Source of the DNA: Ramazzottius varieornatus
Lineage: Eukaryota; Animalia; Tardigrada
Length of the DNA stretch: 64,000 bases
NCBI GenBank assembly: GCA_001949185.1
Contig: BDGG01000008.1
Span: 62,001-126,000, forward strand
Direction: 5' to 3'
Shown piece by piece: positions 1,132 through 38,379 of the stretch. The position numbers and the translations under genes are program-made. Position 1 is the stretch's first letter. The number at the start of each line of letters is the position of its first letter. The notes beneath the pieces are model-generated. The model saw nothing but the letters and a program-made list of their open reading frames with translations. It did not search any database and was not told the origin of the DNA.

Positions 1132-3141
1132 ATGTTTTGCAGTCATGTGTTGGGAATATACCGAACATGGGGACTGATTATGGTGTGTTTATTCACTTCC
1201 CTGTTCCTGGTTGTGGAGCCGTTCGGGAACGAGATGCTATCGTCGTACCTCCTCGCCCCATCCCCTCGCATTGATTACACAAAGTAAAATGAAAATCTTC
1301 TCCATCACTCGCGTTTGACCTAGGTAAAATTTGTCTTCTTTCTGGAGCAGCAATCAGTTGTTCAAGATCTACACTCGGACACCAGAAGACTTGGCGCTGC
1401 TAAAGCGATGGCAGGTGGAGCTGCGCCCGCTTCAACTGGACTTTTGGGACGATGCCTTGCCGGATTACTTCAATCCTTTCCATACCAGCTTCCTGGTTCG
1501 TGTTCCTCCGCAGTCAGTCAAGGACTTCACGGGATACCTCATCGCTGCAGAAATAGACTACCAAATATCAAGTCACGATCTCAAAAAACTAGTCCAATGG
1601 GAGAAGATGACAGTAGCCACCGCACAACAGGCAGGTCGAAACCGTGGCTCCGGGATGGTCATCGCACAAAGCCCCGGCACCGACAGATATCCGAATCATC
1701 GCAGAGTCTTACTCCCGGGTGTACATACCTTAGCATCCTATCTCCCACTGGAGAACGTCAATAACTTTATCGATTCCATTGTCGATCGACATCCTGTAAT
1801 GGCAAGCACCTTCGAAATCGGCAGAAGTTTCGAAGGACGACCTATACGCGGAATAAAGGTACCTACGAGTACCTTACTGTAATATAGAATTCAAGGCACT
1901 ATCTCCTTACGTTTTGTGTCGCTCAACTTAGATCGGTACTCCGTTTATGAACTTCGGGGAAACCACCTTTGAAGACCCACAGTCAGTTCCACCCACAGTA
2001 AAGAAAGCCATTCTTATTGACGGTGCCATGCAAGGCCGTGACTGGATTACCGTGCCGGCTTTACTCTATCTCGTGCAGCAACTTCTGTCTCGCTACGATA
2101 TTGACGACCGAGCCAGATTCATGTTGGACACGTACGACTGGTACATTGTAAGACCATCTTTTCTTATATCATAGGCTCTTGTCCCTCGTTTTATGCCCTT
2201 GTTTTCAAAGATACCGGTGGCCAACCCGGACGGATATCTCTTCTCCTGGCAGACGGTAAGTGACGAACCTTCTGCTTACTTTTTAGAAATCGCTCTTCTG
2301 CTTTCCTTGTATATATGTAGGATCGGTTCTGGAAGAAGACAAGATCGATCAGTGCTCTAAACACCACGTTAGGCAATCCGCAGTGCCGCGGAGTGGACTT
2401 GAACCGAAACTTTGCCTTTGGATGGGGAAAGAGCGAAGAGTCGGACTATGAGAGCTCCGACGTGTGTCATCGGTCCTTTGGAGGTGGCAAGCCATTCTCC
2501 GAACGAGAGTCCACGGCACTCGCCAAGTTCATGTTTAATAACCGGAAGCAGATCAAGATTTACATCACCCTTCAAAATTATGGCCAAGCGGTCCTGACTC
2601 CTTATGCTGCCAAACCGGTTCTGTCCAAGGATCATCGCAGCCATGTGTTGGCCGGCAGTATCGCCGCACGAGCCATGCATAAAGTCCACGGGGAAGGTTA
2701 CGAACTGGGAACCTTCGCCGAAGCTCTCTGTAAGTTGCCTGTCGATGGAATATTCTGATGAGCGACATTATGATCACCAGGGTCGTGCCGTCAGGTGAAA
2801 CTCCAGCCATGCACGGCCTTGATCAGTTATCAAGGCTGTGCCCGAAACTTTGCATTTTCGACCACTGGTCGGAATACTTTTGACTGGCCGCAAGATCAGA
2901 ATATTCCTTGGTTTCTTTTATAGATCTCGCAGGAGGGACAAGCATTGACTGGGCATATGAAGTGGCAAAGATCAAGTATTCCTTCCAGTTTCAGCTGCGT
3001 GACAGAGGAAGCTGGGGGTTCCTTCTGCCAAGAAGCCGAATTATTCCTGCCGCGGCTGAATTCTATGCCGGCGTAACAGAAATGGCTCACTTTGTCCATC
3101 TCTCAGAGATGGACTATGAAAATATCGACAAGGTTTGGTGA
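1132..3141 (+). CDS. Secreted M14A carboxypeptidase A/B-like protein with prodomain, predicted catalytically inactive (multi-exon)
   Basis: Hydrophobic N-terminus, prodomain (LQLDFWD), IGRSFEGRPI, PVANPDGY, RFWKKTR, GVDLNRNF, PFSERES, GGTSIDW, WGFLLP. Zinc and catalytic motifs are altered (GAMQGRDW, TLQNY, FQLRD). GT-AG introns join the frames. Confidence 0.9.
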
Positions 3142-3273: not shown

Positions 3274-4021
3274 TCACGAACTTTGAAGAGCGCGGAGCAA
3301 CCTTTCGAATACTTCATGCGTTTCCCCGATTCCATCGACGGTTTTCAAAACGCCCTTAGCTTTGTAGTGCTCTATCACCGGTAAAGACTCTCGTCGAAAG
3401 GCTGCGTACCTTTTTCGCACACTTTGTTCTTGATCATCGGAACGGCCACGTCCCAGACACCTAATCAAGTTGAGATCCATTGTGATTACTACTCTGAGCC
3501 AAATGAGTTCAACAAACTGCACGGATACCTTCGAAGTCCCTTTTGAACACATGCATACAGCCGCACATGATGCATAAGCATGTGCATGTGTTCAGGTTGT
3601 TGATCCATGGCTCATACCTTATTAGAGACAGCTCCTCCGGAATATCTAAGAACACGACCGAGCGAAGTTTCATCGTACTCCCAAGACCTGCTTCCCAGGT
3701 CGATAGATTAGACTGGTTTATAGGGAAACCATCCAGCAGGACAGTGCTCGAAGGCGGACAGCTTGCGATGGCTTTCCCGATTAGCGTACACGTGATGTTC
3801 GAGGGGACAAAATTACCAGGCTCTTTCAGAATCTCCGAGATGATCGTTCCATATTGCGAATCGAGCATGTCCCTTTCCGTGCGGATCAGATCGCCTGACG
3901 AAAGATGCACGTAGCCAAGTTTCTCGCTGAGAAGGCTACACTGCACGTCTTTGCCTGCACCCGGGGCTCCAAGGACGAATATCAGCGCCAGCTGACTACC
4001 ATTCTGATTGCTTCCGTTCAT
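3274..4021 (-). CDS. Divergent UMP-CMP kinase / adenylate kinase family paralog (2 coding exons, intron 3461-3617)
   Basis: FVLGAPGAGK, HLSSGDLIR, LLDGFP, RGRSDD..KRY..LPVIEHY; clearly homologous to the gene at 36849-37514. Confidence 0.88.
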
Positions 4022-4859: not shown

Positions 4860-6772
4860 ATGGCAAGAAAGCTTATAACATCGTGTTTATTGATTGTATT
4901 GATTGTGGGACTATTACAGATTTTTTTTGGCGCTTTTGTGTTCCAGCAGACGTCGCACAAGATTCTTAGCGACCTAGGAGATTCATGGTCGAATCTGGAG
5001 ATTCGTCTCCGTGAGAACTCCGACCATCCCACGAACGAGTCCGCTTCGACATCGGCATCCAAAAGCCAGAAAAGGAGTCTGGACTCGTCCTGCAAGAAAT
5101 GGAAGTTATTAGCTTGTGCCATGGTCCATAACGAGGCGGCGTACCTGTTAGAATGGATAGAGTTCCACCGTGGTCAAGGCGTCGACCATTTCGTGTTCTA
5201 CACATATTTCAGTACGGACTTGTTGGAATACGTCCCGATGATCTACGAGGATCTGGGCACCTACGGACTTGTTGATGTAATACCCGCCCGCTTCTTTGCC
5301 CAAGACGCAAAGCGGAAGCTGGACCCGGCGGACTACGCCCAAAACAAGGAGTGGTCAATGGTCGACTGTAATGTACGTTATAGAGAACATGCCCAGTGGA
5401 TTATGCAAATGGACGCCGGTCATTTTGTCCATTCAGAAGAATACAACACAATCTTGGATTTCTTGGAGAATCAAACAGAAAACGCCTTGGCAAACGGCAC
5501 CCTTCCAGAGGACGTCTTTACGGCTGTTCGAGTTCCTACAGTGCGATTTGGCACTTCCGGTGTGCAGGACAAGTTCCTCACATGGATAACACCGAACGCT
5601 TATACTGGAGGAGCCGAAGTATGGGATTAAAAGTTTCCTAGTGTTTTTGTTTTGCCACTCGATAGTCTCTCTAAATAACTTGATCGTACACGTAGGTACT
5701 CTACGAGCCATATCGCGGAACAGAGGACCTTTACCCACTGGTCATCGAAAGCAACCCCAAGCGAGCTCCTCACGGAGAACTGGACGGCAACCTAACCGAT
5801 GTTCCTGTTTGCTCTGGTCAATCCAAAGAAGAGCTACAGCTTTGTAGCGATTCTTCAACCGTCACGATAGTGAAAAGCGGCAGGTGTCCTCCGGCTAACA
5901 TTACCGAATGTCTGAGGCCAACGGAAAACCTTATCTGGCCGGAACTACCTTTGTTACGAGCAGACAACCACAACTGGCGCGCTGTCAATCATGCCAAAGA
6001 AGCCAAGTACTGGGACCCCCTTCATGATCAGACGTTTGATGCGCTGGACACTTCGTGGTTCTCGTCCGTTCTGGATGATATCAAGTTCAAGTACATCAGT
6101 CGAGTACGAGAAGGCATCATGTCGCTGAAACCAAGACTCTTCCTGGATGTGAATCGGACTTGCGACCCAGTAGCGATGAAGAACGGCCAGCAAGTGATGT
6201 GCCCGCCATCTCACCCTGTAAGCATAGATCGTCTAGTAAATTAAAAAATCAGATAGTACAATGAGCTGTCGACACAATTTTAATAATGTTCCATAGTATC
6301 CATACGGTAACTTCGGAGGAAAATGGCTACGAGAATGCTGCGAAAAAGATATAGATTATTATGGGGAACCATTGACGATAGAGTCGAACAGCTGCTGGAA
6401 CTATTCAGGTATTCACTTGGACTGTTTAGATTTCACTGGTACAATCTGATCCTTTTTGGCAAACGAAACTGCAAACGAAACTGAGAAACTGAATAAGGTC
6501 TCTGACTTTGTGGAAAATTTTGGAATTTGGACTTTTTAGTGGTTGACTGCCCCGATCCGCCCGGAGTGGAAAAGTGGCTGCACAGAAGCTGCTGTGTCTA
6601 CACTCCACCTTCCGGCTCTCTCAACGCGACCATGCTGGACTTTGATTACAGCAACGACACCTCACTGGAATATTATGACTATAGTAATGATACCTATTCG
6701 AACGCCTCAGACCCTCTGAACGACGACTTTGATAACAGTATTATTCAACCGATGAAAGGAAGTCTGACGTGA
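4860..6772 (+). CDS. Type II membrane GT-A fold glycosyltransferase-like protein (GT92 / Glyco_tranf_2_4-like) with Cys-rich C-terminal module (about 4 exons)
   Basis: N-terminal TM anchor, Ser-rich stem, LACAMVHNEAAYLLEWIEFHRGQGVDHFVFY motif. In-frame splices near 5618/5696, 6217/6297 and 6408/6540 extend the ORF to the stop at 6772. The 3' exon structure is less certain. Confidence 0.7.
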
Positions 6773-10112: not shown

Positions 10113-11498
10113 CTAGTGTTTCCCCCTCCCGATCTCATACGTTGCGGGCCCCTTCGTTGGCAAGTCTCGAAGCGTCTCCGCCTTTGGGTCCGAGTACCTG
10201 CAAAAACGGAAATTCAGATGAAAAAACCCCGCACAACACAACCACTTGAGCGGTGTACTACGCATCGTCATGGCCATAACGCTTCCGTGTATGAATTTTA
10301 CCCATTCAATGTCGAGTCCATCAGCTTCTTGTGCTAGTTCCTGAAGGTCAGCAGCATTGGTCACAGGCTTTCCTTTCGTCGTCTTCCATCCATTCTGTAG
10401 CCATTTTGATGCCCACTGTGTCATACCTAATGAATACGGAAAAGGCTGATTAACAGTTCGGAAGACACTCAATTGCGCAGTTAAAGCCCCGGAATGTTGG
10501 AAGGCTTTCCACCGGCCATCGCACTAATCTACGACAGTCGAGGATATTCCTTCACACATGGTTTAGCACAGATTCGTTACTGAGACCAACGAATGTCCTA
10601 GTTTTTGAACACGAACTCGATGCCTTATGGAAGTGAGTCTGTGGCTCAAGGGAGGCAAAGCTTCTGATTAGGCAGCCAACTTACTTTGGACAACGAAAGA
10701 GTTGGGGGTATTTATCGTTATAGATTCCACTCCAAGTTCTTTTGCTTGCCGTAAAGCACGAGCAGCGGCATGGACTGCCACACGGTTCATCGTTGGTGTA
10801 CCTTCTATCAGTAACTGCTCTGAAATGTTCCTCGGGGAATCCTCTCCCCAGAAGACACCCACTCCGCATCGTCCCTTGACGTAGCAGACTGCATCGATGT
10901 AGACGACGGCTGTCTTCCCGACAAGTCCTGTGAACGAGAACCATGCACTTGCCTGCTCATACACCCAGCAAATGGGAGCAGACAGTATGGAATTGTGGCC
11001 AGAATTGTGCGTACCTGGAGGAGCGAATTTGGGCTTCTTTTCAGTCTTTTTTTCTGGTACCGTCTCGGTTAGCTCAGTAGCAGGACGCTTGACCTGGACT
11101 GATGGAGCTGGTGCCGTCTTGGCAGGTTTGGAGGAAGCTGCTGCATTTGAGGCGGCTAGGTTCTTAACGGCTGCTCCTTTGTTGACAAATTCTTCAGCCT
11201 CCTGAGCAGTATCGAATTTCTTGAACTGCGCTCCCGTAAATGAAACGGTCTGCTGTTGGCATTCGGCCCTGAGAAGTAAGACAGAATGGTCAAACGGCGC
11301 AGAAGAGGAACGATTAGCCATAGCCTAAAGGAATACATCTTGGACAATCGATCCAGCCGCTCTGAATAGGCCAGCTACAGGACATCACACACCTTTCCCA
11401 GCGGAAGAAAACGGGAGGAGAAGAAAGTTGCCACCGTTGACTTACCATGTTTTGTACACTCCCGGCTTCTTCCCGACCTTGACTGCGTAAAATGGCAT
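10113..11498 (-). CDS. RNase H1-like paralog with intact hybrid-binding domain and degenerate catalytic site (5 exons)
   Basis: MPFYAVKVGKKPGVYKTW|AECQQQTVSFTGAQFKKF (HBD); VVYIDAVC..GVGVFWGEDSPRNISE; TQWASKWLQNGWKTTKGKPVTN. Three intron positions match the canonical gene at 29539-30654. Confidence 0.88.
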
Positions 11499-29538: not shown

Positions 29539-30654
29539 TCAGTGTTTTCGAACACCTTCGTTGGCCAGTCGGTCGGCTTGTTCGTTTCCGTATACGCCTT
29601 GGTGCCCTCTGACGTGCACCTGACAACAAATCAGAACCCTCGTTGTAAATCTGTAGCAATGGATCATTTGAGGGGGAAAAACACGAAGACGAATGATGCA
29701 TTAAGTTAGTAAGAATTACCCATTCGACAACGATGTCATTCATAGTTTCCAAGAGCTCTTCGAAGTCTTCCTTGTTGACCACCTGCTTTCCACTGAGCAG
29801 CTTCCAGTTGTTCGATATCCATTTTGGCACCCACTGTGTGATACCTAGCGGGCGAAGAACATAATTAAGCACTCAACAAGGAATTAAAGGCACAATGTAT
29901 TTGACGAAGCTCAGCGTATCTGACCGGAAGTGGGAGTAATTTACCTACTATTGATCAGAAACTGGCTATCAGTGTAAATCACAATCTTCTTCTTCCCCAG
30001 TTCTTTCGCCTGTGCGATAGCTCGGACGGCAGCATATATCTCTGCACGGTTGTTAGTAGCTCGACCAACTAGCGGTTCCGCGATATTCAGCGGTGAGTCC
30101 GCGCCCCAGTAGACACCGATACCAGCTAAAGCTCCTTCCTGTCCGTTATTATGACAGCATCCGTCCGTGTAAACTACAGCTGTTTCTTCCTCGCTGAACT
30201 CAGCCGGAGCATCTTCACTCACAGAAGATACGTTATGTGAATCAACTACAGCCACGGTTTCCGTCGTGCAAAGTCTCCTGGCTGTCGAAAACTCGCGCTT
30301 GGAAGTTTGGTTAACATCGGTTGGTTGAAGTAAACCTTCTTTCTCGGGTCGTGTATATGGAGTGGGTCGTTGTGGTGCTGCGGCAACGGGAGGTTTCCGC
30401 TGATAATTGGTAGGTGAGCCGCCAGTGGTGTTCTTAGGCGCATCGGTGTCATCTATGAAGGCTTGAGCTTCTTCTATAGTCTTGAACTTCTTGTACCGCG
30501 CACCGGAAAAGGCCTTGACTTGCTCGGCACATTCATCCCTGAAGCAGCGTCAACTTCAACACTTCATCATTTCATAATCGACGGTTTTCGCTTACCAGGT
30601 TTTGTAGATTCCAGGCGTCCGTCCAACACGTACTGCGTAGACGAACTGAGGCAT
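29539..30654 (-). CDS. RNASEH1: Ribonuclease H1, canonical (4 exons)
   Basis: HBD FVYAVRVGRTPGIYKTW..RYKKF; VYTDGCC, TNNRAEI, YTDSQF, HVRGH..GNEQADRLA: all DEDD residues present. Confidence 0.96.
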
Positions 30655-38221: not shown

Positions 38222-38379
38222 CACGCGCCTGGCCTAACTGTTGGCATGGACAAAAGAGTTGGCAGCCNNNNNNNNNNNNNNNNNNNNNNNNNNNNNNNNN
38301 NNNNNNNNNNNNNNNNNGTTGCCGCTTTCGACCGGCTGCCAGCTGTTTTTTCCATGGCACCAGTTAGGCCAGGCGCGTG
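38222..38379. mobile_element. MITE-like element with about 46-bp imperfect TIRs spanning an assembly gap (N at 38268-38317)
   Basis: CACGCGCCTGGCCTAACTG...GGCAGCC at 38222-38267 and its near reverse complement at 38334-38379; CA dinucleotide on both flanks. Confidence 0.65.

Follow-up and report, generated by a model that had tools for sequence, protein, structure and literature searches.

The window, a stretch of 64,000 nt of Ramazzottius varieornatus DNA (contig BDGG01000008.1), contains two RNase H1-type genes, and these are the only such loci in the assembly (55.8 Mb, 200 contigs). They lie in the same orientation about 19 kb apart and are separated by about ten gene models, as counted by locus-tag numbers. 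One of them, RvY_12714, is a canonical copy that looks active. The other, RvY_12703, is labelled "hypothetical protein" in the database; its product starts with an RNase H1 hybrid-binding domain (HBD), which is followed by a basic, probably disordered linker and then by an RNase H fold. Coordinates of both genes, and of other features of the window, are collected in Table 1.

Table 1. Positions of the two RNase H1-type genes and of other features in the window
Feature	Position	Strand	Description
RvY_12703 gene	11498..10135	-	five exons
RvY_12703 exon 1	11498..11446	-	ATG at 11498; start of HBD (MPFYAV...KT and the TG of Trp18)
RvY_12703 exon 2	11268..11015	-	remainder of HBD (..QFKKFD..EEFV) and disordered basic linker with NLS-like KRP...KKTEKKPK
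RvY_12703 intron 2	11014..10928	-	87 nt, in frame, stop-free, GT..AG
RvY_12703 exon 3	10927..10685	-	first half of RNase H-like domain; VYID, MNRVAV, NTPN; Asn151 equivalent is Lys
RvY_12703 exon 4	10426..10302	-	basic-protrusion part (QW..KW..NGWKT); Asn240 equivalent kept
RvY_12703 exon 5	10197..10135	-	VLGP...ASRLANEGARNV; TGA stop 10137-10135; no catalytic His; Asp274 equivalent is Ser
RvY_12714	30654..29539	-	canonical, active-looking RNase H1; full D-E-D-H-D set
RvY_12714 exons	30654..30596, 30538..29949, 29844..29720, 29619..29539	-	
ORF	1331-2758	+	matches M14 zinc carboxypeptidase with propeptide
ORF	3509-4021	-	matches adenylate kinase
ORF	4860-5630	+	matches GT92 glycosyltransferase
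Assembly gap	38268-38317		50 N

Gene structure of the two RNase H1 copies

Three-frame translation and splice-site inspection of RvY_12703 gave an unbroken frame across the five exons. Each of the four introns has GT..AG ends and a good consensus, and translation of the five-exon model reproduces the 245-aa database protein exactly: each exon translation is a substring of that protein, and the three split codons yield the expected W, G and S. No in-frame ATG was found upstream of the start codon. An earlier, sequence-only reading of this DNA had described the ORF and splice sites as intact, and both the introns and the identity to the database protein bear this out; the HBD residues (FYAV, KTW, FKKF), the W..W..NGW series and the basic linker stretch KRP...KKTEKKPK that it listed are likewise all present. 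The same reading erred at the 3' end. It placed the end of the coding sequence at 10113, where the true end is 10135, and it rendered the last exon as YSDPKAETLRDL, which is exon 5 in frame +1, one base off. In the true frame, the end of the exon, ...ASRLANEGARNV, aligns with the canonical ...ADRLANEGVRKH, with the annotated protein and with the ortholog from Paramacrobiotus metropolitanus. Both differences between exon 5 and its counterpart in a close Ramazzottius relative fall at third positions of this frame and are synonymous. The frame given for the last exon was therefore wrong, but the loss of the His and of the last Asp (here Ser) that had been read from it is seen in the true frame too.

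The in-frame segment that forms intron 2 has no counterpart in the canonical copy or the ortholog proteins and evolves fast, with 4 of 29 translated codons differing from the close Ramazzottius relative. By these sequence comparisons, the segment behaves as an intron.

For comparisons between the copies, RvY_12714 was used either one exon at a time or as residues 1-218 of isoform RvY_12714-2. Intron position and phase are common to both genes for three of the four introns of RvY_12703, which indicates that RvY_12703 arose by DNA-level duplication of RNase H1 and not by retroposition. The annotated isoform RvY_12714-2 (253 aa) uses a donor two bases downstream after ...FLINS, which leads to a frameshifted tail, so that the final third of the RNase H domain is lost; splicing at the donor that preserves the frame (A|GTAGGT, phase 1) yields the complete enzyme. 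RvY_12714-2 is either an alternative product or an annotation artefact. Canonical orthologs are found alongside the dead copy in other species as well (BV898_10134, LOC129581986; PMC11233135 supplement). The canonical RNase H1 ortholog of Acutuncus antarcticus, whose best matches are RvY_12714-1 and BV898_10134, responds to ionizing radiation with increased expression (log2FC 1.21, adjusted p = 2.5e-18; PMC11233135 supplement).

Loss of catalytic residues

Residues are numbered after human RNase H1, using a phmmer alignment to PDB 6VRD/2QK9 and an HMM alignment. Two-metal catalysis by RNase H requires the D-E-D carboxylates. In RvY_12703, the Asp equivalent to human D145 is kept (VYID), while E186 is Ala (in MNRVAV), D210 is Pro (NTPN in place of YTDS), H264 is Pro or deleted, and D274 is Ser; six residues are missing around the His loop. 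Four of the five catalytic positions are thus replaced, and the protein lacks the D-E-D-D plus His feature set of the RNase H1 enzyme (EC 3.1.26.4). The claim that the first catalytic Asp is the sole one remaining is confirmed by the substitutions E186A, D210P and D274S. These are evident against human RNase H1, against 47 active-looking homologs, and in the HMM alignment of 236 proteins.

The 236 proteins are the closest database relatives of both copies, and they contain 253 RNase H domains, of which 194 have the full D-E-D-H-D set. The remaining domains are mostly truncated, and only a handful of full-length ones are truly degenerate. Because the full set is present in 194 of 253 of the relatives' domains, the pattern of catalytic-residue loss in RvY_12703 is, by alignment, far beyond chance.

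Orthologs and order of decay

Orthologs in related species, which the earlier reading had proposed to look for, were recovered by profile and whole-library searches in Hypsibius exemplaris (OWA51828.1, "putative Ribonuclease H1") and P. metropolitanus (XP_055329058-61, "ribonuclease H1-like", four RefSeq accessions for the protein), and all lack E186. The searches also found two ORFs on one 2153-nt Logan contig from a very close Ramazzottius relative. In a maximum-likelihood tree of 52 sequences, the three dead proteins formed one clade with 100/100 support, within which the Ramazzottius and Hypsibius copies were paired at 100/97; this topology agrees with accepted tardigrade relationships. 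The support for the dead clade and the pairing of Ramazzottius with Hypsibius together indicate that inactivation predates the Hypsibioidea-Macrobiotoidea split. A tree uniting the dead clade with the canonical tardigrade sequences, as expected for a tardigrade-specific duplication, was not rejected (AU p = 0.24).

The three orthologs differ in how much of the active site they have lost. That of P. metropolitanus keeps the equivalents of D145, D210 and D274. The position of the catalytic Glu is occupied by Ala, Ala and Leu in Ramazzottius, Hypsibius and Paramacrobiotus, respectively, and none of the three has the His. D210 is lost in both Ramazzottius and Hypsibius, D145 is Glu in Hypsibius, and D274 is lost in Ramazzottius; the H. 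exemplaris model stops before the D274 position. Since Glu and His are missing from all three orthologs, these two were most likely lost before the rest. Drift of the remaining carboxylates would have followed while the binding surfaces stayed constrained, as expected of a pseudoenzyme. The dead clade is a clean case of stepwise active-site decay, in which carboxylates other than the Glu were lost in the hypsibioid pair alone.

The C-terminus of the H. exemplaris model is odd: it ends in ...VEWVGRFSPGHTYV directly after the conserved exon-4 boundary. This looks like intron read-through, and the true last exon is probably missing from the annotation.

Fold and nucleic acid-binding surfaces

The exon-2 part of RvY_12703 alone matched PF01693 (Cauli_VI, the HBD) at 29.3 bits against a cut-off of 21. 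The same family is listed for the protein in the precomputed Pfam table, and the HBD aligns to human 3BSU with E = 6e-10. Single exons scored below the cut-off for PF00075 (17 and 18.9 bits against 25.8); for the full protein, the precomputed table lists this family, and the phmmer match to human RNase H1 has E = 1e-37. An AlphaFold2 model of RvY_12703, built on a 50-sequence alignment, had a mean pLDDT of 86, with values above 90 in both domains and of 50-59 in the linker, which is probably disordered. The best Foldseek matches of the model were the complexes of the human RNase H1 catalytic domain with hybrid, 2QK9/2QKK (target TM 0.83-0.86). On this prediction, the RNase H fold is retained.

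Conservation of the binding surfaces was assessed at the 86 columns that are conserved in 70% or more of the active-looking homologs, of which there were 47. In the HBD, 20 of 22 such columns are unchanged in all three dead proteins, including the equivalents of human Y29, W43, K59, K60 and F61; the equivalent of human F58 is Phe in all three. Residues Y4, W18, F33, K34 and K35 of RvY_12703 correspond to human Y29, W43, F58, K59 and K60 and are invariant in the three orthologs. We take Y29 and F58 to be hybrid-contact residues, as in the HBD-hybrid structure. Human W43, K59 and K60 make HBD contacts with the hybrid (PMC6846478).

At nine columns, each of the three dead proteins carries a change. 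One is a conservative Val-to-Thr change in the HBD; the other eight belong to the RNase H-like domain, where they sit at or beside the active site and on the RNA-contact side: T144, N151, an Ile-to-Val change, R179, N182, E186, S211, and the Asn of the G-N-E motif. Across Ramazzottius, Hypsibius and Paramacrobiotus, N151 is replaced by K/K/L, R179 by T/V/K and N182 by M/M/L, and Ser211 is Asn in all three. In the human catalytic domain, N151A and R179A are the substitutions that reduce hybrid binding most (PMC6846478). On the DNA side, the dead clade has kept T181, N240, W221, W225 and the NGWKT protrusion, and S233 has become Thr. W221 is a DNA-selective deoxyribose-stacking contact, and the phosphate-binding pocket selects the DNA strand (PMC8960830). 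The proposal of intact hybrid-binding surfaces in the sequence-only reading thus stands for the HBD and for the DNA side, but not for the RNA side, where N151, R179 and N182 are replaced. Because N151 and R179 are among the residues lost, the remnant domain may not contact hybrids in the ancestral manner, and the kept Trp, Asn and Thr residues could serve fold stability alone. Net charge and pI did not separate dead from active RNase H domains. A basic cluster lies just before the RNase H-like domain in every ortholog.

Selection on the dead domain

Identity between orthologs was 73-77% for the HBD, 51-67% for the RNase H-like domain and 16-45% for the linker. Over shorter evolutionary distance, the close Ramazzottius relative had no amino-acid changes in the RNase H-like domain (exons 3 and 4; 0/121 codons) or in the HBD part of exon 2 (0/30), 3 in 54 codons of the linker, and 17 in 107 codons of translated intron and flanking sequence. 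The contrast between the RNase H-like domain and the translated non-coding sequence is significant (0/121 vs 17/107; Fisher p = 1.3e-6), the comparison being one of ORF translations from the single 2153-nt contig and not of nucleotide alignments. Exon 4 was identical at 41 of 41 residues. Comparisons at the protein level therefore indicate that the dead RNase H-like domain is under strong purifying selection. We regard it as highly probable that RvY_12703 is a selected, non-catalytic RNase H1 paralog, as judged from these alignments. The original proposal of a natural, catalytically dead RNase H1 paralog is upheld, and the 100/100 clade in three genera, the purifying selection and the predicted retention of the fold mark the gene as evolutionarily maintained.

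Proposed function and alternatives

We favor, with reasonable though not high confidence, the view that RvY_12703 is a pseudoenzyme: an old duplicate of RNase H1 that lost catalysis and was kept by selection as a nucleic acid-binding protein. That it binds hybrids appears somewhat likelier than otherwise, given the residues retained, and we would assign it a specific physiological role with less assurance than that. In the proposed mechanism, the HBD would dock on RNA:DNA hybrids, with weaker binding to dsRNA, and the catalytic-domain remnant would add contacts to the DNA backbone without hydrolyzing the RNA. RvY_12703 would then occupy hybrids without removing them, and could mark them, shield them, or compete for them with the active RvY_12714. 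The protein is probably nuclear or cytosolic, as suggested by the lack of an upstream in-frame ATG or N-terminal extension and by the basic cluster before the RNase H-like domain. RvY_12703 was not found in the parts available to us of the supplementary tables of three tardigrade transcriptome papers (PMC9145152; PMC5531438, 200 of 273 files; PMC11233135). Gene models annotated in three genomes, and the four RefSeq accessions of the P. metropolitanus protein, are indirect evidence at most for a stably expressed product.

The most serious competitor to a hybrid-binding pseudoenzyme, although a distinctly less probable one, is that the RNase H-like domain now serves for protein interaction or as a scaffold. 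Contact with nucleic acid would then be left to the HBD, if it occurs at all, and the protein would tether its partners to hybrids or dsRNA. The replacement of N151 and R179, and of N182 and E186 on the RNA side, in all orthologs is in keeping with such a change. The three orthologs also have similar replacements (K/K/L, M/M/L, and Asn for Ser211), which may point to a new surface under selection and speaks against random decay. However, T181, N240, W221, W225 and the NGWKT protrusion are invariant in both the dead clade and the active enzymes, and no partner is known or predicted.

The intact frame, the three-genus clade and the 0/121 versus 17/107 amino-acid changes led us to reject a young pseudogene. 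More generally, there is little reason to believe that RvY_12703 is a decaying duplicate or an unexpressed pseudogene whose frame is open by chance or by annotation. Such a reading could draw on the odd C-terminus of the H. exemplaris model and on the Logan run assemblies, which gave no record of the exact RvY_12703 protein, but it has to contend with splice sites that are as intact as the frame, with orthologs in three genera that form a 100/100 monophyletic group and share 51-67% identity in the dead domain itself, with the excess of changes in the adjacent non-coding sequence, and with a fold predicted with high confidence. It is even more improbable that the protein is a still-active nuclease with a rearranged active site. 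The P. metropolitanus ortholog, with three of four carboxylates (the D145, D210 and D274 equivalents), is the one member of the clade that would lend itself to this idea; against it, none of the three orthologs has the His or the Glu (the latter replaced by Ala, Ala or Leu), R. varieornatus is left with one carboxylate, and H. exemplaris has Glu at the D145 position.

Comparison with known systems

RvY_12703 shares the architecture of eukaryotic RNase H1 (human RNASEH1; RvY_12714), namely an HBD (PF01693), a flexible linker and an RNase H fold (PF00075). Its HBD contacts and DNA-side residues are conserved, and its predicted structure superposes on 2QK9/2QKK. It differs from these enzymes in the replacement of the Glu, the second and fourth Asp, the His, N151, R179 and N182, in an extra intron and in a six-residue deletion.

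There are precedents for an RNase H fold that outlives its activity. The connection (tether) domain of retroviral RT is an RNase H fold without catalysis that is retained beside an active RNase H, and Bacillus subtilis YpdQ is an RNase HI homolog without activity. Like RvY_12703, both have retained the fold after catalysis was lost; unlike it, they lack an HBD, have separate origins in other lineages, and are not animal cellular RNase H1 paralogs.

Engineered, catalytically dead RNase H1 (D210N and similar) is a standard probe for hybrids and R-loops (PMC8266564). By analogy, RvY_12703 is a full-length scaffold that would be expected to bind hybrids without cutting them. The engineered proteins, however, have one substitution and keep all substrate contacts, whereas RvY_12703 has, in the course of a long evolution, changed at no fewer than eight active-site or RNA-side positions, and its affinity and specificity may differ from those of the laboratory probe.

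Multiple RNase H1-type genes also occur elsewhere. Caenorhabditis elegans has four (rnh-1.0 to rnh-1.3), of which only rnh-1.0 has both canonical domains (PMC9371901). The worm thus resembles the tardigrade in having more than one such gene, but the pattern is the opposite of that in the tardigrade copy, in which both domains are kept and catalysis is lost. Judging by the title of a study by Kochiwa et al., the C. elegans RNase H1 proteins are reportedly enzymes with different substrate specificities. Arabidopsis has four RNase H1 proteins, all of which are active (bioRxiv 662080). Our literature search turned up no description of a naturally occurring dead RNase H1 paralog from tardigrades or other animals, and nothing on tardigrade RNase H1, RvY_12703, OWA51828, XP_055329058 or RvY_12714.

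Significance of a natural dead RNase H1

Laboratories mutate RNase H1 into a non-cutting hybrid binder for R-loop mapping, and evolution seems to have done likewise beside an active enzyme. Taken together, the sequence comparisons point to RvY_12703 as a real, conserved and catalytically disabled RNase H1 paralog for which a role as a hybrid binder is plausible. Should RvY_12703 bind RNA:DNA hybrids, the animal would have a natural regulator or protector of these structures, and the protein would in addition offer an evolution-optimized scaffold for probes. The setting is of interest, as tardigrades are renowned for their tolerance of DNA damage and the canonical RNase H1 of A. antarcticus is radiation-induced (PMC11233135).

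A broader scenario can be drawn, which we consider speculative and rather unlikely in its entirety. Parachelan tardigrades would have anciently fixed a natural dead RNase H1 that reads or shields hybrids, for instance those at transcribed regions, at DNA breaks or during desiccation and rehydration, and that antagonizes or times the active, radiation-inducible RNase H1. This would constitute a new regulatory layer of animal hybrid metabolism, one that has arisen independently elsewhere too, as in the octopus and entomophthoralean fungus candidates described below.

Other RNase H1 variants

The scan of the 236 proteins also yielded further candidates that lack catalytic residues. In Octopus sinensis XP_036355021, D145 is Ala, E186 is Val and D210 is Ser, and the HBD is degenerate too. 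In Entomophthora muscae KAJ9052076, D145 is Ser, D210 is Thr and D274 is Asn, and the HBD is intact. Going by these substitutions, the two may be independent dead paralogs, and dead RNase H1 may recur.

Tandem fusions of RNase H1 units were observed as well. A 660-aa protein of Parasteatoda tepidariorum contains three HBDs and two complete RNase H domains, and a 538-aa protein from an ENA contig has three fused RNase H domains, the second and third of which are without catalytic residues.
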